Shown here one piece after another: positions 4,134-62,746 of a DNA stretch of 64,000 nucleotides. Made by a program: the position numbers and the translations under genes. Every line of letters starts with the position of its first letter. The stretch's first letter is position 1. The notes beneath the pieces are model-generated. The model ran no database searches, was not told the DNA's origin, and was given only the letters and a program-made list of their open reading frames with translations. The stretch lies in the sequence record OQ708376.1; one strand, 5' to 3'.

Positions 4134-4136
4134 TAC

Positions 4137-39509: not shown

Positions 39510-39534
39510 AGAAGGAATATAAGGAGAACTACAC

Positions 39535-40972: not shown

Positions 40973-40982
40973 AGGAAACCAA

Positions 40983-43585: not shown

Positions 43586-44611
43586 TTAAACACAAGTAGA
43601 CAGGGGAAGCTCCTAGTGAACAACCTTTATGTACAGGCGAATTGTTAAAATTCAGCCTGGACAAATGCGATCACTAGGATTCTCCCCAGGCTAAACCCCG
43701 TAATCATAGGTAGTCATAAGTAATCATATATAAACATTTATATGAGCACCGTAGAATCACAGAATGATTATATATGATTCAGTACTGATTAGTATAGACA
43801 AGAATTCTCAAGAATGCACGGGAAGGATTCAGTACTGATATGCCACTAAGTAGGCAGAGGAAGTCTGCCGTACTTTGTAGTTTCCAAGCTCCTTTTCCAT
43901 TTTTCAAATTACATCAAATGTAATCAAAAGTAATCACGCAATGATTAGTACTGAATTATTACTTTCACCTTAATTACAATTACCCTTTTACCCTTCGGGG
44001 TAAAATTCAATTACCCCTTGAGGCTCCAGCAAAAAGTTGGTTAGTACTCCATCCTAAATCTCGATCCTAAAAATTTTGGAGTACCTATGAAATAAAAGTT
44101 GGATCTTCGAAAGTTGAAATTTACGTTGGGACGTTTATGATTTGTGGGATATAATGATGTTTGTAGACGGGTAGTTCTCAAGAATATCAGTACTGAAAGA
44201 TGAAAGAAAGTTATTGACTTTATGATTCAGTACTGTATAATGTTCTACATAGGGTGATGAGTTGCTGCGAACAATTCATTTACTCTACCTCCTGTCGTGA
44301 GACAGTACAGAAAAGATAGTTCCTCCTGTGGTGGTACATCTTTTTGAACCTCATATGAAAATCGTAATAACAGTACTGATATTAACAGAATGGTGTCAGT
44401 ACTGATTTTAATCTAAAGCATTATGCCACCAGCACAAGCTGGTGGATTCCCTCTAACAGTATTCAGTACTACATGATGGTCTTCATCCTCCTAGGGTAAC
44501 ATAGTGAGGGCTATGATGGCAGTACTGAATACTCCCTTTCAAAAGATAGATCTATGGTATAGTACTGACGGATTTTGGGCGTAGTTACCCTGGATGGATT
44601 TTGGGCGTAGA

Positions 44612-44755
44612 TATGTCTAGCCCTCCAGAAGTCTGGAAGTAAAGATGGCTATCCATCTAGACGGCTAAACGGCTAGATTTCTGGATGGCTGGATGGCTAG
44701 ACGTTTGGACGGCTAAACGGCTAGATGGTTACACGTCTGGAAGTATAGACGGCTA
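44612..44755 (+). repeat. phased degenerate 8-bp tandem array, consensus GAYGGCTA, 18 units
   Basis: Near-consensus units at 44644, 44660, 44668, 44684, 44692, 44708, 44716, 44724, 44748, all in the same 8-bp register. Confidence 0.85.
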
Positions 44756-45384
44756 AATCAAAATTTTATTTTGTTTTTTCCAATAGTTCCCCTACCGCGT
44801 GGGGATAGTTTCCCCGCAGTATCTGGTGTTAGATTTTTCTGAATCTGGAATCATTATCTTATAAACTGGGGGCAATGTCAACGGCCTGGCCGGATATTTT
44901 TAAAAATTTTTTCAGTACTGAATTTTGGGCGTAACTATGCACCCGGTGGGCTTGAGTCTTTCTCGACTTGATGGAACTATTATACAGTACTGGAAAAATA
45001 AAGCAATACCCTGGAAGCAAAAAAGTTTTAATTAATTTGCTTGCTATCCTGGGCCGGACTATGGTACTATATTTCAGTACTGAGAAAGTGCGTTTACCTG
45101 CTAGGGTGCGGGAGTGTATCCTTTTTTTATATCTTGAATTTTGGACGGATCTTCCCACCCCCTGGGGTATCCGCTTTCTCGCGTCTATGTAGTAATTATA
45201 CGCTTTTTCAGGATCAAGTCAATACCTAAAAACAAAATAATTGAAAATAATTTAACGCGTTTAAACGGCCTGTAAAGCCCTGGAATGATTGGAATGGTGC
45301 AAATGTATAGCTTATGTGTATTAATGCGTTAGAATGCGTCTGAGGACGTTTTACGGGGTATAGGGATGATTTAGTGGATTGATT

Positions 45385-45471
45385 CAGTACTGAATAATAG
45401 TACTCCTATATAGAAAGATAGTTCCCCTGGATGATTGCAGTACTGAATAATAGTACTCCTATATAGAAAGA
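45385..45471 (+). repeat. 34-bp exact direct repeat, two copies
   Basis: CAGTACTGAATAATAGTACTCCTATATAGAAAGA at 45385..45418 and 45438..45471. Confidence 0.9.
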
Positions 45472-45585
45472 AAACTATTTTAAAAGTATTTGTAGAAAGT
45501 ACTTGCACCGTACTGATAAAAGCGTATAATGTTTTACATCGAGAGCGGGAACACTTCCCGCTACACATTAAGAGAGATTAAAACG

Positions 45586-45948
45586 ATGGCGACTCAAATC
45601 AATAAAATCATGCTTAACCTGGTAAACTTCCGCGATGAGATGAAAGGTCTTCCGGCTGAAACTGTAAAAATTCACATTGCAGCTTATCGGGAACTTATTG
45701 CAATGTTGCCGCTTAAGCGTGAACAATACGCCGCTACTTTGATGCTGGATTCAATGATCCATATAATGATCTCAAATGATTTGACGATGGTTTATCAGTA
45801 TATGGGCGAAAATTTCGCGGTGTGTAGTAAGCCAGTACCAGGGATGGCAACAACTGAGGAATTGCACGGCTTAAACTTAAAACAAGATGCATGGGATAAT
45901 ATGCCTCGTTTCCTGGTATGGGCTGACAGTGGCAAAATTTACAAATAA
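45586..45948 (+). CDS. early hypothetical protein
   Basis: Start re-called downstream of the promoter hairpin and RBS. Confidence 0.75.
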   Translation: MATQINKIMLNLVNFRDEMKGLPAETVKIHIAAYRELIAMLPLKREQYAATLMLDSMIHIMISNDLTMVYQYMGENFAVCSKPVPGMATTEELHGLNLKQDAWDNMPRFLVWADSGKIYK

Positions 45949-46041
45949 GTTTAATAAAGTACTTGCAAACTATGTTTAATGGCGTATAATGTTTTACATC
46001 AGGTGGGGAATAGTTCCCCACTATATAAGAGGATTAAAAAA

Positions 46042-46281
46042 ATGGCTAAATCAAAAATGTTCTTAGGTCACAAAAACAAAACTCATTGGAATGTAAGCCT
46101 TTGGATTAATAACGATGAGGGATTGTATCGGTTGGCCCAGGACTTTATTAACGATAGCACTAATCGCAATGATGCGGCCCGTCATATGATGTTATTTTTA
46201 GAACAGACTGGACAAGATAAAACACCGGACGGATTCAAATATAGCACTACTGCGATCCGTGCGGCGATGGTTGGAATGTAA
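46042..46281 (+). CDS. early hypothetical protein
   Basis: GAGGA RBS; WNVSLWINNDEGLY motif. Confidence 0.75.
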   Translation: MAKSKMFLGHKNKTHWNVSLWINNDEGLYRLAQDFINDSTNRNDAARHMMLFLEQTGQDKTPDGFKYSTTAIRAAMVGM

Positions 46282-46367
46282 TAGAATTTATTTAAAGTAC
46301 TATCATTTTTTTGCGATAGTACTTTATAATAGTGTTTTATTCATACACCAACGATAAGGGCAACAGC

Positions 46368-46634
46368 ATGAAAATTAAGTATTTTGCGACGCGTGAACAA
46401 GCTCGGATCGCCGCACGCCAGGACGGGGCAACGTTTAAAGATATGGGCGTACAATCGGAACGTGGTAAACGTTGGGCCATTGTAAAGCGTAGTACCGCCA
46501 GATCATTACAGTACTGGTTAGCGGCCTTAAAAAGTCCCGATAGTGTATCGCGTCGAGTGGTAGAAATAAAGCTCGACCGAAAGGGCAACCGCGTGACCGT
46601 GTACCGTACTAAAAAGATTGCAGTACTTGAATAA
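46368..46634 (+). CDS. basic early protein, paralog of 58345..58740
   Basis: K(Y/F)(F/Y)ATRE.AR..AR..GA.FKDMG and DRKGNRVTVY shared. Confidence 0.75.
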   Translation: MKIKYFATREQARIAARQDGATFKDMGVQSERGKRWAIVKRSTARSLQYWLAALKSPDSVSRRVVEIKLDRKGNRVTVYRTKKIAVLE

Positions 46635-46715
46635 AAAGTACTTGCAAACTATGTTTAATGGCGTATAATGTTTTACATCGAGAGCGGGAACTCTTCCCGC
46701 CTATAACCTGGAGTA

Positions 46716-46952
46716 ATGAAAATGACTAATATGTATATGACTGAAGTTAAAACCGTAAAAGATACTACCACGAATAAAACTACTTACTTACAGCGGATCT
46801 GTGGTGTATGGCAACGTATCAGCAAATCAAAGTACTTTAAATTAACATCATATGCAAACCGTTCGGATTCATTCAGTACTGAAATAAAAGGTAATAAAGT
46901 ACACCAATACGGCACTTATTATTATTATAGCCTGGACGCGATTGCAGTATAA
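46716..46952 (+). CDS. early hypothetical protein
   Basis: Own promoter, GGAG RBS. Confidence 0.7.
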   Translation: MKMTNMYMTEVKTVKDTTTNKTTYLQRICGVWQRISKSKYFKLTSYANRSDSFSTEIKGNKVHQYGTYYYYSLDAIAV

Positions 46953-47020
46953 GCAGTTTACAAATCTTTACAATTGCCGGTATTGACTTATTTTGTCAGT
47001 ACTGGCATAATGTATTCATT

Positions 47021-47125
47021 GGCAGATAAGCCGTAGCCCATAGGGTGCGGGAGTGTATCTATAGAAAAATTAGTTTAGTATAGTTACAATTGTGCACCCG
47101 GTGGGTTAGCTGTTGTCATGGGGTA
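47021..47125. ncRNA. convergent pair of promoter-driven mini-RNAs (CCC-N3-GGG-TGC family)
   Basis: + promoter near 46984 and - promoter near 47153 face each other with no ORF between; 11 family copies in total. Confidence 0.5.
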
Positions 47126-47237
47126 TATTATACCAGTACTTGATAATGCTGTCAATACTTTTTTTTTACTATTCAGTACTGAAAACTATTTTTAAAAAGT
47201 ACTTGCAAACTATGTTTAAAGGCGTATAATGTTTTAC

Positions 47238-47312
47238 ATCAGGACGGGGAACGAAATAAGTAACTTCCCGTTAAGTAGCCCAGGAGTAAGGCACACGAAA
47301 AACTCCCCTGAT
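47238..47312 (+). ncRNA. candidate ~75-nt structured RNA, copy A (B 57150..57222, C 49793..49865)
   Basis: Starts at the promoter TSS; closing stem ATCAGG/CCTGAT, two inner hairpins, TAAGTAG linker, covariation among copies. Confidence 0.55.
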
Positions 47313-47380
47313 AAAATAGTTTGACAAATGTTTTTAAAAGCGTATAATACTTACATCAACTACTGAATGAGGGTTACAAA

Positions 47381-47992
47381 ATGAAAACTATCACTACTAC
47401 TACTTATGTTATGGCTTTTTCTGAATTGAACGCAGAACAACAAACGTCAGCTATCGAACTGGTTCGGGAACGTGAAAAAAACTCAAACGACAATTATTTT
47501 TCTGAAAGTGAAATTGAATACTATAAAGAAACAGTACTACCGGAATATGGCATTAATGACGCTGAAATACAATTCAGTGGTTTTTGGTCCCAGGGTGACG
47601 GTGCATCAATCAGTACTGACCACGTTGACGCAGTGAAGTTTTTACGCAAGGTAAGAGCATTAACTAAGTATCGCTCAATCCGTCACTTGCTGAATGAAGA
47701 TGATTTGGCGATGAGTGTAAAACGTTCGCACTCCCACTACTCGCATGAGAATACTGTAAGCGGGTACATTGAATCGGCTTACACTGATTTAACCGCAAAA
47801 CAAGAAACGTTAGTTAATGAGCTTGAGGAACTACTCACTGAAACTATTCGTGAATTGTCCCGCAAGTTGTACCGTGATTTAGAGAATGCATATGAGGATC
47901 AATTCACTACTGAAAACATTACGGCACTGATTGAGGGTAACGAATATCAATTCAATGTTATTGATGGCGTAGTAGAATCAATCGAATATTAA
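47381..47992 (+). CDS. acidic early protein with FSGFWSQGDGA motif
   Basis: GAGG RBS, own promoter, 203 aa. Confidence 0.8.
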   Translation: MKTITTTTYVMAFSELNAEQQTSAIELVREREKNSNDNYFSESEIEYYKETVLPEYGINDAEIQFSGFWSQGDGASISTDHVDAVKFLRKVRALTKYRSIRHLLNEDDLAMSVKRSHSHYSHENTVSGYIESAYTDLTAKQETLVNELEELLTETIRELSRKLYRDLENAYEDQFTTENITALIEGNEYQFNVIDGVVESIEY

Positions 47993-48084
47993 TTTAAAAA
48001 GTACTTGCAAACTAAGTTTAAAAGCGTATAATACTTTATATCGAGAGCGGGAATAGTTCCCGCTACTAATGAGGAATACTACAA

Positions 48085-49675
48085 ATGAATACTTTTACCT
48101 TCGCTCAATTGAACGCCCTGGATGTATTGTCTGATGCTTTGCGGGATGCAACTGAAAGCGGTTTATTTGACAATGTTGACATTCACCCTGATGTAATTAA
48201 TAATTTTTGTGATGCTATCGCAGAAGTACTGGAAGATCTAAAAAAATAATAGAAAGTACTTGCAATTAGTTTTCAGTACTGTATAATGGTTTACATCAAA
48301 GGGAGAAATGGTTCTCCCTGGTAATGAGGAAAATACAATGGCTAATATCACTACTCTTTCCCAACTGGAAGCACTGGTTAAATCTATGCGGGAACATGCT
48401 GACAAAATCGGCGTACAAGATCCAGCCGTTTGCTTCTGCGACGAATTGAATGATGATACCCTGGTAATAGCAGAAGTCCAGGACGTTTCTAACTATTCCT
48501 CGCGTTACACTGGCGGCGTAGCAAATAAAGGTGACTTCTGTTTATACCTTACAAAATAACAACGCGGGGAGATAATAACTCCCCGTTACTTTTTCAGTAC
48601 TGAATCATTTAATAGACGGATCTCGGCACCCGGTGGGTTAGTGACTGTTTCGTCTTGATGTAGTAATTATGCCAGTACTGGATGCACTTGTCAACAATTA
48701 TTTTCCAAATACTTTTTATTAAAATACTTGCAATTAGTTTTTAAACGCGTATAATGTTTTGCATAGGGGGAGCGGTTCCCCTGGTAACTAAGGAATAATA
48801 AAATGCTTGAACAAATCAAATCAACGTCTTCGAATGTAACGGGAACGGTAGCACACTTTACTAGTGATGAATCGCGGGGCGTTCCCTATTGTGCTGTACA
48901 TGTAAACACTGAGGGTAACTACTGGTTTACGGTTTACGGATCATATTCATTTGGACGGCCTGGACATCAAAAAATTCTGGATAAAGTACAACCAACGGGT
49001 AAAAATATCACTGCCGAAATGTTTTATAAAAAATCATAAAGTACTTGCAATTAGTTTTTAGTACTGTATAATATTTTACATCGCAAGGGGAAACGGTTTC
49101 CCCTGGTAACTAAGGATAATCAAATGAAAATTGCAATCATCGCCCTGGCTTTATCTGTTTCCTCTTTCGCTGTTAATGCGTCATTAGATGTAAGTAGTGA
49201 AAAATTCATTCAGTGCACTGTTGCAATGACCGATGAAAGAACTGGCGAGATTGTATTAAAGGATTTAGAGATCCAGCCGGAAGCATTTAAAAACGGCCCG
49301 TTCCATGAAGAAGACGAAAACGGTAGCACGACAATTTATTATGATGCCAGTACTAAACGCGGTTCGGTCACTGTAATGGATACCGAGAAAGTAACTCATA
49401 CCGGCGTTATTAATTGCCGTTGATAGATACTACGGGGTAACATCATGACTAAGCGAATTGTTTTACTTAACGAAAGCAGTACTACACAACTACTTAACGC
49501 CGTGCATTATGATATTGAAACGAGCGTTAATCTTATCAGTACTGTAGTTCTGTTGGACACTGGAAAGGTAGCCAATGATAAAGCGATTGCAGGTATACTA
49601 ACGGATCTTGTGCCTGGTAGCAGTGCACCAATAACGTTAAATGGTAAAGTGTTTAATATTTTACTCACTGATTAA
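48085..49675 (+). CDS. five early genes (48085..48249, 48338..48559, 48803..49039, 49124..49423 with signal peptide, 49445..49675)
   Basis: Most have their own promoter-hairpin-RBS; terminator AGCCCACC-T-GGTGGGCT-T run at 49682. Confidence 0.7.
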
Positions 49676-49908
49676 GTACATAGCCCACCTGGTGGGCTTT
49701 TTTGTTTTTGTAGTATCGTAGTACTGAGATACTTTGAAAATAGTTTTAAAAAAGTAGTTGACATTACCACAGAAAAGCGTAGAATGTATTACATCAAGAC
49801 GGGGAGCACTAAGTAGACCGCCAGTAAGTCGAACGAAAAACTGGACACGTCGAGAAAACTTTGATACACTAATAAACGTAAACTAAACTTTAATTGAGGA
49901 TTTATAAA

Positions 49909-50391
49909 ATGGCTAATGTAAAATCATTCATCAAAGCACTGGTAGCAAATGAAACTAACGTCGCGGCTGAGATCCTGGCTGAACTGGATAACGATACCAT
50001 GAAAGCGGTACGCAACAATTTTAACATTGCGTACAGTGAAGCTAAAGAACTGCAAGCCAAAAAGGTAGCAGAACTGGAAGAACAGAAAAAAGCCCGTGAA
50101 GCAGAACTACAAGCAACAATTGAAAGTATTCAGGCGGCAGTGTCTGGATTGGATCTGGAAGTGGTTGTAGAAATGGCACATAAAGCCCTGGCGGTTAAGT
50201 ACGGTGAAGATAAGCCGGAATCTAAACCTAAAAAATGGATTCAAGAACGTGTTACTGTAGTACTTGATAACGGTGAAGAACATTTGATTCCTGTACGCGG
50301 TAACTGCATTGCGGTAGTACTGGACGCTATCAAAGAAAGCGGTATGACTCGCGAGGAATGGATCGAAGCTCATCGCAAAGTTGAAGCATAA
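49909..50391 (+). CDS. H-NS-like protein with a degenerate DNA-binding motif
   Basis: N-terminal coiled coil, K/P linker, C-terminal DNGE...RG..AVV.DAI.E.G...EEW aligning by eye to H-NS ENGE...QGR.PAVI..AM.E.G...DDF. Confidence 0.5.
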   Translation: MANVKSFIKALVANETNVAAEILAELDNDTMKAVRNNFNIAYSEAKELQAKKVAELEEQKKAREAELQATIESIQAAVSGLDLEVVVEMAHKALAVKYGEDKPESKPKKWIQERVTVVLDNGEEHLIPVRGNCIAVVLDAIKESGMTREEWIEAHRKVEA

Positions 50392-50676
50392 CAATTAAAG
50401 TACTGAATCACTAGCCCACCTTAAACAGTGGGCTTTTTTGTGTCTGTAGTATTCCAGTCCACCAGCACCGCCTAGAATCGATTCTAACGCATTAAACTGA
50501 TTATCTGATACATCGCCCTAGCTGGTGGCGTTAAGGTCGTTAGAATGCGATTGAGAGCGTTTAAAGTATTTTGCAAAAAGTAATAAAAAGTACTTGCACG
50601 ATTAAGAGATTAGCGTATAATGTTTTACATCGAGAGGGGGAAACGGTTCTCCTTCCAAATCAAAGGAATCAAAACA

Positions 50677-51203
50677 ATGGCTATTATCATTACTCGCGTA
50701 TCTGGTACTACTGGCAACGAACAAGTAGTTGCAGTCATTACTAACAAGGCAGGTGCGGAATTGCAAAATGCAATGAATACCTGGGCCGTTAATGAGTTCG
50801 GTCAGTGGGCAAGTGTAGCATACATTGAAACCTATCAAGTGCCGTCGATTAGTTTAACTGATTTGGGCGTTGAGCGTATCCTTTGCCTGGATGAATTAAA
50901 TTAAAAAAAGTACTTGCAAAGTAAATCGAATAAAGTATAATACATTACATCAAGGGGAGAAATGATTCTCCCCACTACAAGGAAACTAAAATGGCTATCA
51001 TTACTAAAATCAAAGTTAACAAGACTATCGTTAAACTGGCAGAAGTGAAAGAAGGTTATAAAGTATCTTGGTGCGGTATGTATCGGACGTTCGCAGATAT
51101 AGATGATGCGATCAATTATTACAGTGACACGGTTAAAAACTTTGTTCGTGCTGATGTGGTTATGGCAGTGGCAACATATAAAGCAGCGAAAGAAAGTAAG
51201 TAA
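50677..51203 (+). CDS. two early hypothetical genes (50677..50904, 50991..51203)
   Basis: Own promoter cassettes and RBS. Confidence 0.7.
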
Positions 51204-51294
51204 AAATATTATCACAGTACTATTGACATAGTTTGATAGTACTGGCATAATAGATTTTATCAAGACGACACATATTAATTTAAGGAATACTAAA

Positions 51295-51618
51295 ATGGCT
51301 AAAACTATCATCAACACCGTTTCCCTGGCTGCAATCCATGCAATCAATGTTGACGGTAAACGTTGGACTGATTCATATGGCAATACTTATCATTCTTGTC
51401 ATGTAAGCGTTGAACTGGATAACGGCTTGAATGATCTGGCGGTTGAATCATTTACTTATGGCTATGAGGATGCATATCAACAAACGGCGGTATCACTCTT
51501 AAAGGAATCAGTAGACGGGCTTGATACTGTTGAAACCTCCCTCTATCGTTTGTGCAATGATCTTAATATCCCGTTGCATTGTACTGTACAGGATGTAAAA
51601 CGTAAAAAAGATCTTTAA
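51295..51618 (+). CDS. early protein, paralog of 57926..58249
   Basis: RWTD..GNTYHSC.VS...FTYGY...DVKRKKD shared. Confidence 0.8.
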   Translation: MAKTIINTVSLAAIHAINVDGKRWTDSYGNTYHSCHVSVELDNGLNDLAVESFTYGYEDAYQQTAVSLLKESVDGLDTVETSLYRLCNDLNIPLHCTVQDVKRKKDL

Positions 51619-51698
51619 TTAGCTTTACTTTATGCAGATACTTTGATATAGTGTCTGCATAGGGGAAAGAAATTAAATCAACTTAAGAGGAAAGTAAA

Positions 51699-52728
51699 AT
51701 GAAAAATATCAGTACTTTAATCGATGCAGGTACACATGTTCGTCGGTCTATGGTTGCAACCAGTTCTACAAAACAAGTAGCGAGCGGTTATCTTGTATTT
51801 GTGCACGATGGAAAACTCCTGGAACGTTCAATCAATTTTGATGTTAAAAACAATTGCCGTTTTATTATCTTTCGCCGTGAACAATATAAAATTGATTTGC
51901 CAGCGAAGCCCATTAGCGGGGCGTACAACGTGCAATCATTGTTTGAGCGTCAACCTTACACCTATTAATCAAAACATCGTTAGCGGTCGATTTAGGCCGC
52001 TTATATTGGGGATTATACCATGAACGTTAATCAAGTACTGAATGAGATCGAAAGCATCATTAAACCGATGAAGCGTACTGATGCTATGTTAACACCGGAA
52101 GAATGCCGCCTTTATGAGCGTTACAGCGTCGAACAAGTCCAGGCAATGGCTATGGCTACCCCAGCCGTTTCACCGCCTGAGAATGCGTTACAGGACGTTA
52201 CAGGGGATTATATCATTAATCCAGTACTAGGGAAGATGACTGCAATCACCGAAGATCAAAAAGACTACTTAAGCCAGTACTTAAAAGGTTAATTAATATG
52301 CTTACTGTACAGGATAAGATCGACATCTTAAAGGTTAATATGTATGTGATTGATGCCGTACCTGGTAAAGTATTTGCATACGATGATAGTACTGTAAGCG
52401 ATTTCTACTATAGCCAGGACGTGGGGGATCTTTCTGTACAGTCGGTTATTGAAAACGTAGTTAATGCAGCGTATGAGCATTTACTTTCAAATAGTACTTG
52501 CAATTAGTTTTTAAACGCGTATAATGTTTTACATGAAGGGGAGAAATGATTCTCCCCAATAACAGGAGAAACAAAATGAAACAATACAACGCTCGGTTTG
52601 ATGTTACTATCGGTAACGGCAAAGGTCAATTCTCTTTCAGTACTCGCCGCAGTTATACAGAAAACTTCCTGCGTAATTGTGCACTGACCGCCGCTCAAAT
52701 TAAACACTATTTTCAGGCTAAAAAATGA
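51699..52728 (+). CDS. four early hypothetical genes (51699..51968, 52020..52292, 52298..52507, 52576..52728)
   Basis: RBS and co-orientation. Confidence 0.65.
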
Positions 52729-53168
52729 AATCATTAGCTTATTACAGTTCGGCCCTGGTCGGTGCATTGATCGCGGCATTGTTAGTAACCTATCTATTCT
52801 TTATGGTGATTTAAATGAATCCAACAGGTTTAAACTATAAAAGTTGTTCTGCATTTACGAAAGCAAATAAAGCGAATGCACGTAAAGCGAAAGTACAGGA
52901 ATACATCAAGCAAGGCATGACGCGAAAAGCGGCGATTATAAAAGCTAAAAATAAATGAAAAAAGTGGTTGACTTCGGTCAGCCATTTTGTTATTATATAT
53001 TCATTGAGAGATAGCTCACTAGCCCACAGGGTGCAGGAGTGTATCTATTGTATGAGTATTGAGTACTGAAAACTATTTTTAAAAAGTACTTGCAAACTAT
53101 CTCAATAAGCGTATAATGTTTTACATCGAAAGGGGAAACGGTTTCCCCTGGTAATAAGGAAACAAATC

Positions 53169-53819
53169 ATGACTATCTCAATTGCTCAATCTAACTTTGA
53201 AAATGAAATCATCGCCCAGGCACTGCGTTTAAATGATGGTCGGGCCGAAATTAATTACGGTTTCAATTCAGGCGGTTGCGAAAAATATCAGTACTTTGTA
53301 ACGGCTGATGGCGGTGTCCTGGGTATCAATACAGTTATTGTAAACATCCAAAAAATTAATTTCAATGATCCAGACGATAGCCAGTTTTACATCACTGGCG
53401 TAGACGTGAACTATGAGGATGACTCACTAACTGATGATCACACTGGCGAGCGGTTAGAAAGTGCATACGGTGAAGATGATTATCAGTCCGGTCCAGAAGA
53501 TTTCGAATAATATAAAAAAATAGTTTGACAATAGATTATAGTACTGTATAATAGTTTACATCAAGGGGAGAAAAACTTCTCCCCACTAACAGAGAGAGAA
53601 AACAAAATGGCTAATATCCGGTCGAAATTAAAAAATGCAAAACAAGTTTTATTTTCAGATCATGAATACTTTAATAAAGATATTACAGGAGTTACAAGTA
53701 TCAAGGAAGTAAAAGAAAAAACCGGCGTTTTGTGTGATGTGCGATTAGTTGGAACATTTGGGAATAACGTGCTATATCGCTGCGGTGATTACAATTTTAC
53801 ACTGACTATCATTAACTAA
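53169..53819 (+). CDS. two early genes (53169..53510 acidic; 53607..53819)
   Basis: Own promoter cassettes and RBS. Confidence 0.7.
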
Positions 53820-54958
53820 AAATATTATCACAGTACTATTGACATAGTTTGATAGTACTGACATAATAACTTTTATCAACTACACTATTAAGGAATTAAA
53901 AATGGCTATCATCGCAAAAACTGAAATCGTTGGTCTGGATTCTATCATCATGACGTTTGAAGATCAAAAAGGTATGTATGTAGTTTCATATGGTGATTAT
54001 GTTCGGGAGTATGAAACGGTAGACGAAGCCTTTGAAAGTTACATTCGCCAGGTGAATAAAGCATACGACGATTACCGCTAAAATATATTACCAGTACTAT
54101 TAAAGATATTGACAACGTTTGATAGTACTGTATAATAAGTTTTATCAACAGTAGTTAACTTAACCTAAGAGAGAAATAAAATGATCGCACTGGATTCATT
54201 CATCGACGCAGTACTGGCAAAAACTGGCGAGGATCTGACCGCAGAACAATACGCAATGATCGAGCAATGCCAGCAAGACGGTAAATCGGTGAAAGATACT
54301 GTTAAGATTATCCGCAAGATGTAAGATTATAGCCCACTGGTTAACGCTGGTGGGCTTTAATTCATTACCCTATACAATGCCAGTACTAAACCGTTTATCT
54401 CGTTAGAATGCGTTACAGGACGTTTAACAATGATTAGCATGAAATCAGTACAAAAACAAATAGAAACATTATCAAAAATTAAACGTAAACAGTACTCCTT
54501 AGAATATACAATCAATGGTAACTATCATCTAATGAAAGAGAATAATTTTATAGTCATTGATGAATCATTGCAAATCATTAGTATAGTACTGAAAGCATTA
54601 ATCAATGACAGAAAAAAATTAAAATAAACTATTGACAATATCATCAAGTACTGGCATAATACTTACATCAAGACGAGAACGTCACTAACCCATAGGGTGC
54701 ACAAATGTAACTGTATAATATTGATCAAAAAATGATCTGATCAATACTTGATCAATTTGCGTAAAGTAGTATAATTCTATGCAGTTGGTTAGACGAAAGG
54801 TTATGATTAGTAGTGCAAGTGTATAAAAATTTTCATGGTGTATCGTTTCGCACATATGGGGATGAATATGTGGTATCATGTGGATTGGAAAAAGTAAGAA
54901 CAAGTAATATTATTGTCGCATTACAGTACTATAGTATTTTTATAATGAGGTTAAAATA

Positions 54959-55216
54959 ATGGCTGTAGGATTCGCGAAAGATGGGGCCGAACAAGACGAG
55001 ATTAACGCAGTGATTCAGGCCGCCGTTAACCACGCTAGAAAGCAAATTAACGCACAAATAGAATCACTGATACATTGCCTCGACTGCGGCGATATAATCC
55101 CTGAGAATCGACGCCAGGCCGTTAAGGGATGTAAGTACTGCATAACTTGCCAGGAGGATCATGATAGTACTTTTAAACGTCCCCCGCGTAATTGTTGGCA
55201 TAGATCTATGAGATAA
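54959..55216 (+). CDS. DksA/TraR C4 zinc-finger protein (YbiI-like)
   Basis: MAVGFAKDGA N-terminus; CxxC-G..IPE.RR.A..G-CxxC..CQ. Confidence 0.85.
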   Translation: MAVGFAKDGAEQDEINAVIQAAVNHARKQINAQIESLIHCLDCGDIIPENRRQAVKGCKYCITCQEDHDSTFKRPPRNCWHRSMR

Positions 55217-55279
55217 AAAGTATTGACAGTACTGAAAGATAGTGTATAATGTTTTATATCTTAACTGAGGATAGAAATC

Positions 55280-55636
55280 ATGGGAATACAACATATCACG
55301 CGTACTACTGACAATGGCGAGATCACTGGTTATCAAGTACAGGGCAAAGTAGCACAATTGCAGTACTGGTTTGTTAAACGTGGAATCATTGCACCGGATC
55401 TTGATTATGACCGTGTAGCGTTTATTGATTCTCTTTATGTTGATCCTGATAGTCGGGGCAATGGTGAAGGTAACGAATTAATGAATGCCTTTATTGATGC
55501 CGCCGATGATTCAGATTGTATCATTTTAGAATGCGATACGGGAGAAGATAACGCCTTTAATCTTAAAGAATGGTACGAAGGTTTCGGATTCGAGGTACTG
55601 ATCGATAGTGAATATCCTATCATGATTTTATCATAG
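55280..55636 (+). CDS. GNAT-family acetyltransferase
   Basis: IDSLYVDPDSRGNGEG (motif A) and WYEGFGF (motif B). Confidence 0.8.
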   Translation: MGIQHITRTTDNGEITGYQVQGKVAQLQYWFVKRGIIAPDLDYDRVAFIDSLYVDPDSRGNGEGNELMNAFIDAADDSDCIILECDTGEDNAFNLKEWYEGFGFEVLIDSEYPIMILS

Positions 55637-55708
55637 TACTTGCATTTAGTTTTCAGTAGTGTTATAGTACTTACATCAAGGGGAAACATCTTCCCCTACT
55701 AAGAGGAA

Positions 55709-56550
55709 ATGAAAATGGAAAACTTATCAAGTATTTTAGTACAAGATGATTTCGGTAATCCTGGAAGTGCTATCATTGTTCGGGGTAATAAAGCAACATT
55801 TGTTATTGCTGGTGGACCTGTACAGCGTAGCATTAAAAACAATGCCGTTACTATTAATAATGTACGCTATCGCTTAGATAAAGAATTGATTCATAAACTG
55901 TAATATTAATTTAATAGAGGATAACAATAAATGTACATTCATACTACTATCACAAAGGAAGTCCGTTGCCAGTTCGAAAGTATTCCGGGCGTATGTTTCA
56001 TCACTGGTACGTTTTCCCCTGGTGATCGTGATAATCCAGTACTGTTACAATTACGCCATCCATCATGGGATAAAGCATTTGATCTACCGTTGAATGAATT
56101 CGCAACTACTGCTGAAAAGTACATTAAAAATATTCGCGAGAATGATCGACTATTCATTAATGCTTTTAGTGATTCCGCGTTAAGCGAGATCCACGGTGTA
56201 TTGGTTGCAATCATGGAATCAATGGAGAAAACTAAATTCAAACAAGGTGAATAAAAACTATTGACAAGATAATCTAGTACTGTATAATAAGTTACATGAA
56301 GGGGAGAAATGATTCTCCCCACTGAGAGGAAAGAAAAATGCAAGGTCAACTAATCGTTCGTAAATGGTCTGATACTAACGCTAAACCGTGGGATGTACAA
56401 TACATCGGACCGGATGGGGTATCACGTTATCAGCCTGGCGTAACGCATAGTACTGAGCAATATGCCGCCGCTCACCGCGAACGCCTGTTAGAATCCATGA
56501 AACAGGGATACGGTGAAAAATTCATTCAAGATCATTGGCTGAAAGATTAA
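55709..56550 (+). CDS. three early hypothetical genes (55709..55903, 55931..56254, 56338..56550)
   Basis: GAGGA RBS; promoter cassettes. Confidence 0.7.
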
Positions 56551-57291
56551 TATAAGGAGTACAGCTTATGCAAATGAATCCGATGATTATTGTTTTAGCT
56601 GTACTTATGATCATTCATGCAATAGTAGAAGTATTAACGCAATCAGGAGTAATAAAATGATTCAAGTAGAATTATCAGTACTGAAAGATCTGTTTTATCG
56701 GTTAGGTACTACTGGCGAGTATCCTAAAAGTGATACCGCAAAACTTTTTGTATCACTCGACTTATGGCAACGCGAACAATTAGTAATGTCCTGGCGTAAA
56801 GGTAAAGCAGATAGCGAGGTGAAAGCATGAAAGAATTCTTATTCGAAGTAGTGTTTCAAGGTGTCGGTAGTAACCAACTGATTCGCTCAAGTGGTTACAA
56901 TGTTAACCAGGCATGGAATAACATTAAACAAATGTACCCGAACGCTATCACCTATCGCAACCCGAAACAAGTTTAAAAATAATTGAAAAAGGGATTGACT
57001 CCGGTCAGTCCCTTTGCTATTATATACGCATAGAAACAAATCAGCCCACAGGGTGCATAAATGTATCTATTGTTTGCTGGTGGCTAGTACTGAAAACTAT
57101 TTTTAAAAAAGTACTTGCATTGTACTTAGAATCAAGTATAATGTTTTACATCAGGACGGGGAACGAAACAAGTAACCCCGTTAAGTAGTCCAGGAGTAAG
57201 ACATAAGAAAACCTCCCCTGATAAAATAGTTTGACAATAGAAAGTAAACGAGTATAATACTTACATCAACCACTGATAAGGAAACATTAAA

Positions 57292-57567
57292 ATGCGGATT
57301 CTACTGACAGCTAACGAAATCGAACAAGTACTGACTACTAACCTGGAAGACTGGAAACGTGAAGCAGATATCCAGGCGGTTCAACGGCTTAACGATGAGT
57401 TAACGCCGGATGACTTAAGCAAGATTGTAGATCCTCAATTCTACGAAGATATCCACGACACCGCGTTAAGCGTCGAGGATGTACTAGATAAGCACTACAT
57501 TGATATTGATTTGCAGGTTTACGGTCGTAAAAACTTTATCACTATTCACGACATTTACAATAATTAA
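57292..57567 (+). CDS. small highly acidic early protein
   Basis: About 20 D/E versus 8 K/R in 91 aa. Confidence 0.75.
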   Translation: MRILLTANEIEQVLTTNLEDWKREADIQAVQRLNDELTPDDLSKIVDPQFYEDIHDTALSVEDVLDKHYIDIDLQVYGRKNFITIHDIYNN

Positions 57568-57653
57568 GTATTGACAAAGTATCTTAGTACTGTATAATAG
57601 TTTACATCGAGAGGGGGAATGGTTCCCCTCCTAACAAAGAGAGAGAAATAAAA

Positions 57654-57836
57654 ATGGCTAAATGCACTATCTGTAAGAAAGAAATCGTATTAGTTCCAAG
57701 TGCCCGTGAACGTGCCGCTCGGTTCGGTGGCAAAGCGTCAGACTATACAAAAATGTTTACTACCCATGCAGCTTGCCAGGTAGCAAAACGTTCACAAGAA
57801 AGCGTAGAATTAATGCGTAAACTTTCCAAAAAATAA
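57654..57836 (+). CDS. small Zn-binding early protein
   Basis: CxxC...HxxC. Confidence 0.7.
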   Translation: MAKCTICKKEIVLVPSARERAARFGGKASDYTKMFTTHAACQVAKRSQESVELMRKLSKK

Positions 57837-57925
57837 GTATTGACAAAGTATCTTAGTACTGTATAATAGTTTACATCAAGCGAGGGGAATGGTTCCCCTC
57901 CTAACTAAAAGAGAGAGAAATAAAA

Positions 57926-58249
57926 ATGGCTATGATCCTTACCCAGAAAGTAGAACTGAAAATTGTAACCTCCTTTGACATTAAAGTTAATCGCTGGACT
58001 GATCGGAACGGTAACACTTACCACTCTTGCTACGTGTCCGCGTTAATTGGCGACCGCTGGGAAGACTTGGGACATGAAACCTTTACTTACGGTTACGGTA
58101 CACAAGGAGAATACACGGGCTTGGAGATCATTAAAGAAACCGTTATAGGTTTCAACCCGAAAGAAAAAGTTATTCACCGCATCGAAAAAGAGATTAACAA
58201 AGAAATAACAGTTCGCTACTACGATGTAAAACGTAAGAAAGACATGTAA
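57926..58249 (+). CDS. early protein, paralog of 51295..51618
   Basis: Shared motifs listed under 51295. Confidence 0.8.
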   Translation: MAMILTQKVELKIVTSFDIKVNRWTDRNGNTYHSCYVSALIGDRWEDLGHETFTYGYGTQGEYTGLEIIKETVIGFNPKEKVIHRIEKEINKEITVRYYDVKRKKDM

Positions 58250-58344
58250 TAGAATCCATTTAAAGTACTATTTGACATTGCCCAGATAGTACTTTATAAT
58301 AGACTCTAACTTGTAGTACTAACTCAACTAATAGGATGTATACC

Positions 58345-58740
58345 ATGATTACTAAATTCTACGCTACCCGTGAAGCTGCCCGTATTGTTGCACGCGAGGA
58401 AGGAGCAGCATTTAAAGACATGGGCAAAGATGCACCGAAAGGTCAACGCTGGGCCGTACAGTTCAAAGAAATCTCTGATATCGTGAATTCACCGGAGCCA
58501 GTACTAACAGCAGCAGAACTAAAACGAGCGGATTTACTGGCGGCAGTACTTAACGCACAAGATGAATTTATCGCTGATTCTGATATCAAAGTACAGACAA
58601 ACCATACCGCTTGGACTCACGCGGATCACCTGGCAAACCTTAAGCGTCCAAGTGAACTGGTTCGCAACCAGAAAGAGATCCGACACGACCGTAAGGGTAA
58701 TCGTGTAACAGTATACAGTAAACGCCGCCAGGTTATCTAA
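58345..58740 (+). CDS. early protein, paralog of 46368..46634 with a longer middle segment
   Basis: Shared N- and C-terminal motifs. Confidence 0.8.
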   Translation: MITKFYATREAARIVAREEGAAFKDMGKDAPKGQRWAVQFKEISDIVNSPEPVLTAAELKRADLLAAVLNAQDEFIADSDIKVQTNHTAWTHADHLANLKRPSELVRNQKEIRHDRKGNRVTVYSKRRQVI

Positions 58741-58802
58741 TAACTTGCAGTACTAACAACACGGCGGGATCAGTTCCCGCCTTTTTTATAGGATAAACTA
58801 AA

Positions 58803-59057
58803 ATGATTAAGGTACAACTATCTAAAGATAATATCTTGCGGGTACACTATAAAGCACCACAGAGAATCATCACAAAGGCCGTACAGCTTGCTAATGAGTT
58901 TATTAATGGTAACCTATTACCAAGGAAGTTAAGCAACGGAAAACTGCGTGTAATCGATGTAGACACTAACAACAGAATAGTAATTGAGAACACAGGAAAG
59001 ATAAACCTATATGAACACCAACAATATAATAAGAAAATAAAACTAATATCACGTTGA
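58803..59057 (+). CDS. possible ParE/RelE-like fold protein
   Basis: P.RI..KAV.L...F..G...R.L...I.V...R.V...H..YNK pattern. Confidence 0.35.
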   Translation: MIKVQLSKDNILRVHYKAPQRIITKAVQLANEFINGNLLPRKLSNGKLRVIDVDTNNRIVIENTGKINLYEHQQYNKKIKLISR

Positions 59058-59110
59058 CAGTACTCAATTGTTTTAGTACTATGTACATATACCAACACGG
59101 GAGAAACAAA

Positions 59111-59630
59111 ATGAAATTATCTAAAATCGAAAAGAAAACTATTGATGAAGCAGTTAAGCACGGTTATACCTTTCGTAATGATTCACATTTTACCAATTTT
59201 CAACAAGGGTATCGTACTATTAAAAAACTCATTGACAAAGGTTTATTAGTTGAAGTCAATAACGGCAATGGTATTGAGTATCAACCAACACAAGACGCAT
59301 TTTATTTTAAGAAATATAATATTATCTAATTGACAGTACTCAAATGTTTTAGTACTATATGTACATACCAACACGGGGAAAAACAAAATGATTACTTTAG
59401 AAAAACGTATCAAAGAAACTACATCGCTGGTGGAACTGTTAACAGTACTGAAATGCCGTACTACTCGGTTTAGTACACCGGACTTTATTAATATGGTTGA
59501 TGTTAATGGTCGCTATCGTATCACGGTCGAACAAGGAGCGGCGAAAGTATTCAGTACTAAAAACACTAAGGAAGTGATTCACGCTGTAAGTGTTAAAAAA
59601 GTAGTTGCCATTGATAGTAAAGTACTGTAA
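59111..59630 (+). CDS. two small basic early genes (59111..59329, possible wHTH; 59388..59630)
   Basis: Near-duplicate upstream promoters; TIKKLIDKGLL in the first. Confidence 0.65.
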
Positions 59631-59661
59631 GATAGTTTCATTAACTCAAGGAGAACATGCA

Positions 59662-60246
59662 ATGCGTAATTATACTAAATTCATCCGTACCCTGTCAGAA
59701 ATGGAAACCAACAAAGAGATCCTTTCAGCTTGTCGGTTAGCTGGTCTGGAGATCATCGGTGCGGGTTCTTCCCGTATTGTATTCGCTTTAAATGATCGGT
59801 TAGTGATTAAGGTCGCGAATTGTGATGCGGGTGTAGAACAAAATGAAACTGAATGTAAGGTATGGAATTTTTTAGATTATGACCGCCCTCAATTGAAACA
59901 GTACTTTGCAAAGGTGCATATGCATTTATGCGATCCTGATAATATGTTTATCGTTATGGATCGGTTGAGTACTGCAAGTAAAGGCAGTGTAAAGCACGTA
60001 AACGCGTGCAATGAATTAAAGTACAATATTAAACGTAATGCCATTGAACGCCAGCACCGCTTTGCTGATGCACTACAACACGTTGATGATACATTATCAA
60101 CACTAACGATAAGAGATATCAGAAAACAGAATATCGGCCAGGATCGTAATGGCCTTATTAAAGTACTTGATTACGGTTTAACCCGCAATATCTGGAATCA
60201 GTACTATAAAAAGCGTGATGTAGAAGCAAGTAAGGTAACACGATAA
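59662..60246 (+). CDS. Ser/Thr protein kinase-like
   Basis: IGAGSSR.V, VIKVA, QNETE, DIRKQNIG, LDYG. Confidence 0.8.
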   Translation: MRNYTKFIRTLSEMETNKEILSACRLAGLEIIGAGSSRIVFALNDRLVIKVANCDAGVEQNETECKVWNFLDYDRPQLKQYFAKVHMHLCDPDNMFIVMDRLSTASKGSVKHVNACNELKYNIKRNAIERQHRFADALQHVDDTLSTLTIRDIRKQNIGQDRNGLIKVLDYGLTRNIWNQYYKKRDVEASKVTR

Positions 60247-60467
60247 AAAAGATTAAAAAAGGGATTGACTCCGGTCAGTCCCTTTGCTATTATATATTCA
60301 TTGAGAGATAACTCACTGACCCATAGGGTGCGGAAGTGTATCTATTATATAAGTATTCAGTACTGAAAACTATTTTTAAAAAAGTACTTGCATTGTACTT
60401 AGAATCAAGTATAATGTTTTACATAGAGAGGGGGAAATGGTTCTCCCTGGTAATAAGGAATAAAATC

Positions 60468-62500
60468 ATGACTACAATGACTTGCATTTACGCTTCCAAT
60501 CTTCTGAATGATGCGGCCTTTAATGTTGATTCAGAATATCAATGTTATCGGGATGAAAATAAAAAAGTTTTTGTAGTTGATAATAATGGTTTCCATATTG
60601 AATTACAATCCGGTTTCACTGGTGTTGATGGTAAATCAGTGTGGGGCGTACAGGATGATAAAGGCACATATCATTTTAAACGTAATTAAGTATTGACAAA
60701 GTATATCAGTACTGTATAATAGTTTACATCAAGGGGAGAATAGTTCTCCCCGATACTAAAAGGAAACAAAATTATGTCCAGCTACTCCGCTACTATGATC
60801 ATTAAAGATATGAACGGTAATCCTACTTCTGCTGGTGGATCATTTGGAAACATTAATTTAGATGGTCGGTTATCCATGCAATCAGCCATCGATGCAGCGA
60901 AAGAAGTTTTTAAGAATGAATGTACTGTTAGTAAGATGGATTATATGGGATTCGCTATCGAGAAAACTAATCGTTTTGTGAACTACAAAAATCCACTGAT
61001 GATTGATACTAACCTGAAAGCTAACGAAGTGGGGTACTTATTATGACAGTAGAAGAAGTTAAAAAAGTACTGGCAGTACTACGCTATCATAATCATTGCA
61101 AGGTGAAGAATGATCCTGATTATGTTGATTCATCCCTGGAGGAAGACACATTAAACGCAATAAGCCATATGCAAACATTAGCAAAGCGTATGACCGAAAA
61201 GAATAGACCGGACTATATCGGAAATAAAATTTAAAAAGTACTTGCATTGTAGTTAGATTAACGTATAATGTTTTACATAGAGCGGGGGAATAGTTCTCCC
61301 GCCAGTCCAGGAGATACACCATGAACACTATCGAAATCACTATCAATGCACACGTATACGACAACGTAGTACTGCAAACTACTATGACCGCTAATGATAC
61401 CAGTACTTTGCGGAATACCGTTGTAAGTGCTGTATGTGCTGCAATCGGTGATGTAGCCCTGGAAAATGCAGAACACATCAACAACGGTTTCACTATGTGC
61501 AAACGTGATAACGCAAAACATATCATCTTAGAAGGTTACGGCGGTGTAGAATATAATCTTTATATGAAAAAAGTACTTGCATAATAACTAAAACAAAGTA
61601 TAATGTTTTGCATAGGGGGAGATATCCTCCCCCACTAAAAGGAGTAATAAAATGGCTAACTTTGATGAACTGATGCGGGAAGTAGCTAACCTGGCAGAAG
61701 AGAAGAAATCATTCGATTCTATCTATAACACCGCTCACCGTGATTCAGTACTGGCATGTACTCAGGATCAAAAAGATGAACTAATCGCCACCTATCATGA
61801 AGCATGGAAGTACTACCGACAATGGGAGAAAGAAGAAAGTGAGTCTACCATTGACGGCCTCAATAATCTAATCTAAAAGTTTTATTTCAGTACTATTGAC
61901 ATAGCTTGATAGTACTGATGTAATAACTTTACTAACTACAAGGGGAAACATAATGGAACAGTTCACACAATATCGGGTAAATCCTCAAGCTATGGCCTAC
62001 GTAGAAGACCATAAAACATTACCAGTACTGCAACCAGTTAAAGGCCATATCTATCGTGCTATGTCGTGGAGTACTGCACAGGATGGATATAAAACCGTTG
62101 CCGTGGGTATGTATTGCGGGAATGGTGAATGGTTTGATCCAAATAATCCGGTAGCCATTGACAGTACTGAAAAAATGAAATGGGCCGACTACATCGAAGA
62201 TATTTCATAAAACTATTTGACAGTACTAACCAGTAATGTATAATGTTTTACATAGAGCGGGGGAATAGTTCTCCCGTCAATAGTTTGGAGTAAAACATTA
62301 TGTCTATCGCTATCGCCCTGGTTGAAGTACTGAAAGAAGCTAAAGCCAACCTTATCGATGTACAGATTAAGGAATTACAAAATGGTTTAATCGGCTGTAC
62401 TTGTACCGCTGGTGGAGCGGCAGACTATCGGGAATTCGAATCACTTGAATCGATGGTCCGTTATCTTACCATGATCGTAGAAGATTGGAGAATCATCTAA
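60468..62500 (+). CDS. seven small early genes (60468..60689, 60774..61046, 61043..61234, 61321..61584, 61652..61876, 61953..62210, 62300..62500)
   Basis: Nearly all have their own promoter, hairpin and RBS. Confidence 0.7.
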
Positions 62501-62746
62501 CAAAAAAGAATAAAAAAAGGGATTGACTCCGGTCAGTCCCTTTGCTATTATATACTCATAGACAAAAACTAGCCCACTGGGTGCAGGAGTGTATCTAAAA
62601 TATATAGTTAATAACGGTGAGTAACTATCTGCTGGTGGGGTGAAAACTATTAATAAAAAAAGTATTGACAAAGTATATCAGTACTGCAATAATGTATCTC
62701 GTAGGGCGGCAATGGTGCGACGGCCCACAAAGTTAGGAGATTCAAA

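Follow-up and report, generated by a model that had tools for sequence, protein, structure and literature searches.

Organization of the locus

The DNA analyzed here, termed the window below, is the whole 64,000-nt stretch from record OQ708376.1 and derives from a Rak2-like jumbo coliphage. Phages of this group have genomes of ~350 kb, depend on the host RNA polymerase, and carry more than 80% of their genes without known function. Eleven short promoter-linked units are found in the window, all confined to the part that matches the ~21-kb direct terminal repeat (DTR) of Asteriusvirus (Table 1). The left end of this part was inferred from where the records of CRJP21 and fEgEco12 begin (position 1); its right end lies near or past the end of the window. 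A DTR of 20,993 bp has been established by PhageTerm and restriction digests (PMC13070987). Positions 44800-48800 of the window match vB_EcoM_CRJP21 at 100% identity. Annotated terminators are abundant in the early region and in the leftward RCC1-like array, and a search for tRNAs in the window returned none.

A covariance model trained on 12 members of the family, with which both strands of the window were scanned at E<=1, recovered all eleven units of the original prediction at their claimed sites and matched nothing else. Ten units scored 24.7-67.4 bits, and the plus-strand unit at 45.1 kb, the most degenerate of the eleven, gave a partial match only (13 bits, E 0.93). The 17-nt stretch from GGGTGC occurs five times at up to three mismatches, against 0.04 expected. 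The units were described as devoid of open reading frames, and consistent with this the orthologous units of phage G17 are overlapped by no annotated CDS.

Table 1. Coordinates of the units and associated features in the window (core end, last base of the GGGTGC element or its variant; score, covariance-model bits)
Feature	Coordinates	Strand	Core end	Score	Details
DTR-equivalent stretch of close relatives	43849-64000	.			contains all units
Unit 1	44927-45006	-	44939	57.9	-35 at 45006; -10 end 44979; hairpin 1 44968-44955; core 44950-44939; hairpin 3 to 44927
Unit 1, leftward side	44881-44853				second promoter, then leftward genes
Unit 2 (degenerate)	45041-45128	+	45109	13	weak promoter; 13-nt core 45097-45109; convergent with unit 3
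Unit 2, hairpin 3	45104-45121	+			followed by seven T; terminator-like (45103-45122 in scan)
Unit 3	45143-45222	-	45155	30.1	variant 13-nt core 45167-45155 ending GGGTGG; convergent with unit 2
Unit 4	46983-47060	+	47048	47.9	hairpin 1 47020-47033; core 47037-47048; convergent with unit 5
Unit 5 (short form)	47082-47155	-	47094	24.7	hairpin 1 of 2 bp only; core 47105-47094
Bulged hairpin and T run	47135-47167	+			would terminate unit 4 transcript (fold of 47020-47168)
Unit 6	48614-48694	-	48626	63.8	faces 3' end of upstream plus-strand operon
Unit 7	52968-53046	+	53034	63.7	core 53023-53034; -35 box within 12-bp terminator-like hairpin 52961-52988
Unit 7, downstream	53090-53117				second promoter, then ORF 53169-53510
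Unit 8	54632-54712	+	54700	37.5	core 54689-54700
Unit 8, downstream	54748-54775				promoter, then DksA/TraR-type zinc-finger gene
Unit 9 (short form)	56995-57068	+	57056	33.4	-35 box within hairpin 56988-57015; core 57045-57056
Unit 10	60265-60343	+	60331	67.4	-35 box within hairpin 60258-60285; core 60320-60331
Unit 11 (short form)	62523-62596	+	62584	35.2	-35 box within hairpin 62516-62543; core 62573-62584

Architecture of the transcribed module

From its inferred 5' end the module comprises a first hairpin (H1), a linker of 4-5 nt, an almost invariant 12-nt core and a further hairpin (H3), amounting to ~50-55 nt in total. Covariation in H1, which had been noted in the window alone, is significant in a proper alignment. 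The stem of 3-5 bp, which encloses a purine- or A-rich loop, covaries freely, with all four pairs varying on both sides. In the alignment 91% of the cells are paired and the observed score was reached by none of 500 shuffles. An independent per-sequence test recovers a stem of at least 4 bp in 47 of 80 units, as against 20 +/- 3.3 after shuffling. H1 is reduced to 2-3 pairs in the three short-form units, at 57.0 kb, 62.6 kb and 47.1 kb (minus strand).

The last six bases of the core form the 5' strand of H3. Opposite the invariant GGGUG the 3' strand changes only between C/U, A/G, C/U, C/U and C/U, in a pyrimidine-purine-pyrimidine pattern whose changes retain only G-C, G-U or U-A pairs. Pairing in this register is 89%, compared with at most 58% in slid registers. 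Because of its G-U pairs the H3 fold is strand-specific, and this constrained variation together with the covarying H1 argues for an element acting at the RNA level. The hairpin originally proposed within the core (CCC/GGG) competes with H3, an equally well supported hairpin that shares the same GGG; its change to CCT/AGG is real, though rare. RNAalifold predicts the CCC/GGG helix with an additional purine-U closing pair, and the CCU/AGG compensation is seen in at least three copies. In the modeled structures two alternative folds are open to the module: the core's GGGU is engaged either by the CCC with which the core begins or by the 3' strand of H3.

This double pairing duty could by itself be the source of part of the invariance of the core. 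Nevertheless, pairing alone would not demand so strict a sequence: 75 of 80 copies have A as the first loop base, and 77 of 80 have C as the last core base, a position that is paired in only 58%. Hence, we propose a partner that reads the sequence. Among phages with only ~25-30% nucleotide identity (as given in PMC13070987), the core is also better preserved than the promoter hexamers.

Two other readings of the transcribed region were rejected. Single-sequence folding suggested a long-range helix joining the 5' part to the segment past the core, but a unit's own 5' and 3' segments pair no better (-5.09 kcal/mol) than permuted ones (-4.85 +/- 0.21), 272 of 2000 permutations being as good. Likewise, if GGGTG and a following NTG are read as a Shine-Dalgarno sequence and mini-ORF start, no more than 46 of 80 copies have the required G, and there is no conservation of reading frame.

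It is also conceivable that the core is a double-stranded DNA site, namely an operator or roadblock just past the promoter for a DNA-binding protein of the phage or host. Its fixed position at about +15 to +33 from the start would suit such a site, as would the large inverted repeats formed by paired units and the palindrome lying between these in relatives. However, the 3' strand of H3 shows only transitions that preserve G-U, G-C or U-A pairs on one strand, the H1 stems are compensated whatever their sequence, and the orientation to the promoter is strict, being constant in ~80 of ~80 copies. These features favor RNA over a DNA site, which we consider very improbable, and together with the significant covariation they mark the units as a true family at the RNA level.

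Promoters and relationship to early-promoter cassettes

Each of the eleven units follows directly upon a promoter, as had been predicted, with -35 and -10 boxes separated by 16-18 nt. These are near-consensus, host-type sigma-70 promoters (9-12 of 12 matches) with A runs upstream; as a group they are predicted to be very strong, apart from the weak one of unit 2, and that of unit 5 (47155-47127) is a perfect 12/12. Nine are among the matches listed by the promoter scan, and the remaining two (-35 at 45006 and 45041) were found by pattern search only. From the end of the -10 box to the core the spacing is 25-28 nt in eight units and 21 nt in three. In four of the eleven the -35 box lies inside a 12-bp hairpin (starting at 52961, 56988, 60258 and 62516), an arrangement not seen for the others. 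Since the last three of these promoters have identical -35 hairpins and agree in both boxes (-35 and -10) as well as in spacer length, gene conversion is suggested. Expression had been claimed to be early; the consensus sigma-70 promoters within the DTR make it very likely that it would begin immediately at entry (PMC13070987).

The promoter halves of the units resemble PeSLs (promoter-early stem-loops), which are cassettes of T4-type phages in which a stem-loop accompanies a sigma-70 consensus early promoter preceded by an AT-rich tract (PMC2839356, PMC4122927). Both are repeated cassettes situated among small orphan genes expressed early. The stem-loop of a PeSL may cover the -35 box and end transcription arriving from upstream, and the four units with a -35 hairpin could behave likewise. 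The ordinary gene promoters of the window fit the PeSL description too. This raises the possibility that the units are a mere subclass of PeSL-like promoter/terminator cassettes, serving as linkers that isolate small early genes and as recombination points, with no specific RNA function. The sigma-70 consensus, A-rich upstream tract, -35 stem-loops and surrounding small orphan genes (PMC2839356) accord with it, as do the apparent gene conversion among three promoters and a 121Q unit in which H1 has been exchanged as a patch. However, PeSLs finish in a Shine-Dalgarno sequence and start codon, whereas the units have neither, their next gene being behind a second promoter or absent. Instead they bear a conserved ORF-less transcribed module (H1, core and H3), half of them facing no gene. 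Neither a core that outconserves the promoter hexamers among such diverged phages nor compensated stems would be expected of a linker, and we regard this explanation as improbable.

Downstream context

Both convergent pairs that had been noted were confirmed, with exactly 45 nt between the paired GGGTGC ends in each. In a set of 85 distinct copies 30 are in convergent pairs and 14 reach a terminator-like hairpin within 130 nt. Hence, about half of the copies lack a downstream gene and face either a partner across the fixed 45-nt gap or a nearby terminator, and those outside this half have a second promoter and a gene downstream. The window repeats this division: five of the eleven units are without a downstream gene, and six lead to a second promoter 45-80 nt further on and a gene, with no terminator between. 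Discrete mini-RNAs, as claimed, may be made from the former five, but for the other six, where no terminator precedes the next promoter and gene, a pure small-RNA gene is an unfit description and the unit would be a 5' leader.

The features of an intrinsic terminator, a G+C hairpin followed by a U run, are present in unit 2 and a few relatives and absent from the other ten window units. The stem of the hairpin at 47135-47159, beyond unit 4, contains on the opposite strand the -35 box of the unit 5 promoter, and for this reason it is left out of the four -35 hairpins given above. Unit 6 runs into a hairpin at 48564-48586 that is terminator-like on both strands, giving a predicted RNA of ~100 nt. 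Read-through of a convergent pair is predicted to yield a transcript whose core is sequestered within a long hairpin of -41 to -52 kcal/mol. A palindrome lies between the paired units of relatives. As for targets in trans within the window, the top duplex outside the units (27.29 kb, -25.4 kcal/mol) lies inside a continuous tail of scores, without promoter or unit context, and was rejected.

The downstream context bears directly on the main rival explanation, that the units are cis elements of the put type known from phage HK022. put RNA binds the zinc-binding domain of the RNA polymerase beta' subunit and suppresses pausing and termination in cis. No phage protein is needed for its action, and a -10-like hexamer accompanies putL (PMC9378689). 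Under this explanation the nascent two-hairpin RNA would stay on its polymerase and alter pausing or termination with no phage protein, so that immediate-early transcription could pass the numerous terminators in the repeat and in the leftward gene array. The layout is indeed that of putL, with two stem-loops of nascent RNA just past an early promoter and no need for a protein factor (PMC9378689), though the likeness to putL and putR is one of anatomy only. The fixed distance from promoter to core, the immediate-early timing, the wealth of annotated terminators in the early region and RCC1-like array, and the 21 nt after H3 that are free of insertions and deletions across distant phages are all in its favor. 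Moreover, the 3' edge of H3 is enriched in a -10-like hexamer: at this register 20 of 82 copies match at >=5/6, whereas most of the other 37 registers have 0-5 such copies, and there is a second peak (10 copies) five bases further downstream. putL too has such a pause signal (PMC9378689). The enrichment is confounded, as the pairing of H3 also constrains the first base of the hexamer. Against the put-type explanation, put always precedes genes, whereas here 30 of 85 copies face a partner and 14 of 85 a terminator, making about half gene-less downstream, and in one unit H3 is the terminator itself. Furthermore, HK022 has two copies per genome as against eleven per repeat here, and put is ~70 nt long with long stems and a triplex, while the present module has ~50-55 nt and stems of 3-7 bp. 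Overall, we consider it unlikely that the units are put-type elements, though this is the alternative to be taken most seriously.

Distribution and comparison with known RNAs

The units constitute one conserved family of promoter-coupled RNA modules that is restricted to Rak2-like jumbo phages, where it clusters in the DTR. Covariance-model searches gave 89 matches in 18 related sources. About 80 distinct copies are known from Rak2-like phages, and the 55 phage records that carry the motif are all Rak2-like. Their hosts belong to Escherichia, Klebsiella, Salmonella, Cronobacter, Pectobacterium and Yersinia. The original suspicion that the units belong to no described RNA class is borne out by Rfam 15, where the whole window gave no match to any of 4227 families at the gathering score, and by a search of positions 44850-48750 at E<=10, in which no unit there was matched. 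In the literature on 121Q, PBECO4, G17, CBB, fEgEco12 and PA5oct we found no account of the units.

The distant relative PA5oct, a Pseudomonas phage, encodes ncRNA001 and ncRNA002, which are ORF-less, highly transcribed and located in a long DTR (PMC7318152). At 236 and 451 nt they differ from the ~50-55-nt module, and a motif search of their regions gave no match (best score 5.8 bits), which rules out the same motif in these ncRNAs.

RNA anti-CRISPRs are solitary repeat units in phages that mimic the CRISPR repeat of the host. They too are short, structured, multi-copy RNAs with their own promoter and no ORF, but blastn at E<=10 detected no counterpart of the present module in 5,426 E. coli genomes. 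An exact pattern of the core and the commonest H3, with 14 fixed and four two-fold bases, yielded 20 scattered partial matches and none in Enterobacterales among 185,579 species genomes, although short diverged likenesses or other forms of H3 could escape it. With no counterpart in the E. coli or Enterobacterales searches, host mimicry, CRISPR-repeat mimicry and prophage copies were rejected as origins. A linked partner gene was likewise rejected: in L027 a unit directly precedes the gene for a 178-aa protein with a basic N-terminus, but homologues elsewhere and in the window (13727-14188) are not beside units.

Functional interpretation

We favor, at a probability of about 40%, the explanation that the units are transcribed immediately early, as short RNAs or as leaders, and that a conserved partner is bound by their invariant segment. 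On the transcript ends that we infer from sequence alone, the host RNA polymerase would transcribe the units upon entry of the DNA. At about half of the sites this would yield a short stand-alone RNA, ending at its own H3 and U tract, at a converging partner, or at a terminator ~27 nt past H3, and at the remaining sites early mRNAs would carry the module as their 5' leader. The RNA itself would be the product, with the invariant segment as the recognition site for one conserved partner, and the hairpins framing and protecting it. Candidates for the partner are a host protein or RNA common to Enterobacterales or a core phage protein, which the many early copies may capture, titrate or redirect. 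The more specific proposal, that in the first minutes Rak2-like phages produce multi-copy sibling small RNAs from their DTRs and that their shared invariant segment captures or redirects a conserved host factor, is doubtful but worth stating. If true, these would represent an RNA-based host take-over or anti-defense strategy with no described phage counterpart.

A module maintained at ~10 copies per terminal repeat in phages of at least six enterobacterial genera, and conserved above the promoter boxes, almost certainly serves a step of early infection. It is a defined, short and easily assayed RNA that can be sought in early-infection RNA data, and its ~80 distinct sequences, with one covarying helix and two helices in competition, make it a ready candidate for a new Rfam entry. 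Individual units differ between close relatives: unit 8 is missing from the syntenic site in G17, and the orthologues of unit 3 in G17 and 121Q have a core that ends in GGGTGC.

Distribution of the two-hairpin units

The eleven units (numbered 1-11 from left to right), each consisting of hairpin 1, a linker, a core (typically 12 nt, ending in GGGTGC) and a hairpin 3 whose 5' strand is the last six bases of the core, belong to a real family at the RNA level, of which we found no description in the literature. Reading of the region, anchored on GGGTGC, recovered every unit where the original prediction had placed it and, as also predicted, directly behind a promoter, in each case of the sigma-70 type, and free of ORFs; none of the annotated CDSs of phage G17 overlaps an orthologous unit. 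A covariance model built on 12 family members and run on both strands of the 64 kb matched these 11 units and no others, the plus-strand unit at 45.1 kb being matched only in part. The unit promoters mostly combine TTGACT or TTGACA, spaced by 17 nt, with a good -10 box that often has an extended TG. From the end of the -10 box to the core the distance is 25-28 nt, except in three short units, where it is 21 nt. At four of these promoters a 12-bp hairpin encloses the -35 box and, for the genes upstream, scores as a terminator.

Window positions 44800-48800 are 100% identical to Escherichia phage vB_EcoM_CRJP21 (952-4952), 99% identical to fEgEco12 (960-4958) and 87-98% identical to 121Q, G17, phAPEC6 and other Asteriusvirus jumbo phages. 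The direct terminal repeat of fEgEco12 measures 20,993 bp by PhageTerm and restriction digests (PMC13070987), and that of vB_Ec-M-J is annotated at 1-21,525, with the orthologue of the 53.0-kb unit inside it at 10,392. Judging by the match positions and repeat annotations of these relatives, the repeat would start near window position 43,849 and include every unit. Records with both copies of the repeat (366-384 kb) show 8-10 BLAST places per unit as against 4-5 in the 348-kb records, a doubling which implies that the detectable copies are repeat-borne.

The search of other phages suggested with the original prediction established the presence of the family in Rak2-like relatives: a 53-nt unit used as query matched 55 phage records, all Rak2-like, across the genera Escherichia, Klebsiella, Salmonella, Pectobacterium, Cronobacter and Erwinia. 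Scanning viral contigs by pattern turned up 26 loci, and the pattern-scan and query loci together with G17 and 121Q yielded a set of 80 distinct copies, all 80 of which are coupled to a promoter; the covariance model gave 89 matches among 18 sources. E. coli genomes contained no match to the unit, and 185,579 species genomes returned chance partial matches only, with none in Enterobacterales. No Rfam family was matched, the motif is absent from the repeat ncRNAs of PA5oct, and a tRNA search of the window found none.

Conserved structure of the units

The predicted covariation of hairpin 1 holds for all four modelled pairs, which vary on both sides (in one example CG 21, AU 18, GC 18, UA 5 and unpaired 1); 91% of cells are paired versus 25-54% in slid registers, and the covariation score was reached by none of 500 shuffles. 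As this alignment had been fitted to the covariance model, each sequence was also searched singly, giving a stem of 4 bp or more in 47 of 80 copies against 20 +/- 3.3 in shuffled sequences. The loops are rich in purines and A. An unfitted alignment of the core has five of 12 columns invariant and another five with one base at 94% or more, the remaining two being the second and third loop bases.

In hairpin 3 the invariant GGGUG pairs with bases 3' of the core, where the five columns are C/U, A/G, C/U (8 exceptions), C/U (1 exception) and C/U (6 exceptions), with 89% paired versus at most 58% in slid registers. RNAalifold prefers a CCC/GGG helix with a closing purine-U pair (A-U 40, G-U 43, broken 6); its predicted variation to CCT/AGG is seen as CCU/AGG compensation in at least three copies. 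Since both helices use GGGU and differ little in energy, we read the unit as a module that could adopt either of two folds. The analysis rejected a long-range helix within the unit. The G-U-rich pairing and the strict promoter orientation point to an element that acts as RNA and not as duplex DNA, making a DNA site very improbable.

Genomic context and possible function

Among 85 distinct copies with enough flank, in categories that overlap slightly, 30 belong to convergent pairs; 14 run into a terminator-like hairpin no more than 130 nt away, whose start is usually 39-40 nt 3' of the core; about 26 have a second strong promoter 45-90 nt downstream of the core; and 20 match none of these simple patterns. 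The head-to-head arrangement noted earlier is found in the window as units 2/3 (45 kb) and 4/5 (47 kb). Units 7-11 and unit 1 have a second promoter and genes downstream, unit 6 faces a hairpin scored terminator-like on both strands, and unit 2 has a T run on its own hairpin 3. Exactly 45 nt separate the GGGTGC ends in 12 of 17 pair occurrences, with orthologous pairs of closely related phages counted separately; the phages with these 45-nt pairs span several distant lineages, between which the spacer sequence differs. The other five have gaps of 56 or 63 nt with an inserted 13-bp palindrome at mid-gap, of the form AATGAT-n-ATCATT, reminiscent of an iron-regulator (Fur) box. A read-through transcript over a pair is predicted to form a long hairpin with an energy of -41 to -52 kcal/mol (47-kb pair, z of -4.3 and -5.3; 45-kb pair, z of -3.1 and -5.3), which after the plus-strand unit at 47.0 kb is followed by another hairpin and a T run.

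We favor, at a probability of roughly 40%, the reading that the units are RNAs, either stand-alone or leaders, with a conserved partner putatively bound by the invariant segment. None of the nearby genes with recognizable domains indicates such a partner, and a target search within the window gave no convincing target. The next-ranked reading, a put-like cis element, draws on the layout of HK022 putL, which likewise has two stem-loops right behind an early promoter, needs no protein and carries a -10-like hexamer (PMC9378689). The units, too, have an excess of -10-like hexamers at the 3' edge of hairpin 3, but pairing confounds this signal, and in half of the copies there is nothing downstream that could be antiterminated, leaving this reading rather doubtful. 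Both the promoter halves of the units and the ordinary promoters of early genes in this region agree with the PeSL cassettes described for T4-type phages (PMC2839356); however, PeSLs end in a ribosome-binding site and start codon, both absent from the units, and a bare PeSL-type cassette is improbable.

Other features of the repeat and its surroundings

Positions of features in the window and of wide-gap pairs in related phages
Feature	Position	Remark
DksA/TraR C4 zinc finger gene, early	54959-55216	E 5e-11
GNAT acetyltransferase gene, early	55280-55636	E 4e-9
Protein-kinase-like match, early gene	59605-60246	weak, under Pfam's cut-off
ORF-poor stretch (~1.9 kb)	~43600-45530	at left boundary of repeat; contains three units
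36-nt direct repeat	45383-45418, 45436-45471	in ORF-poor stretch
Early gene promoters (positions include)	45963, 46642, 47203, 48005, 48260, 48728, 49045, 50914, 52498, 53090	
GCTGGTGG in repeat part	44438, 50521, 54346, 55808, 57076, 59426, 60831, 62408, 62631	plus strand
RCC1-like paralogue array	~28000-44000	minus strand
Pairs with 56- or 63-nt gap	L003 2803-2860, 8061-8125; L006 317-381; L020 3093-3157; L027 6071-6128	sequences from related phages

The zinc-finger, GNAT and kinase-like neighbors are typical take-over genes. Almost all of the small early genes are preceded by a promoter of their own. At least 10 of these promoters share the TTGCAA/16-nt/TATAAT hexamer pattern, with near-identical sequence in the copies that were read, and each is followed by a G-run/C-run hairpin and then a ribosome-binding site; they are PeSL-like cassettes of the T4-type phage kind. 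In close relatives the physical end of the genome maps to about 43849.

Across the whole window the hexamer AGTACT is present in 280 copies versus about 22 expected from base composition (13-fold). This puts it in the top three hexamers by over-representation, together with its overlapping neighbors GTACTG and CAGTAC. Its density per 4 kb is 20-30 within the repeat part (43849-64000) versus 7-17 outside, and all six copies of the 12-bp palindrome TTCAGTACTGAA lie in the repeat part. Because AGTACT stands in unit-promoter spacers and about 20 nt past many units, it may bind a phage protein. The octamer GCTGGTGG, the E. coli Chi site, has nine plus-strand copies within the 20 kb of the repeat part and two in the remaining 44 kb (chance expectation about 0.3), with two copies just 3' of units; its orientation would presumably face RecBCD coming in from the right genome end. 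The RCC1-like paralogues, named from the annotation of G17 and 121Q, are in G17 mostly followed by an annotated terminator.
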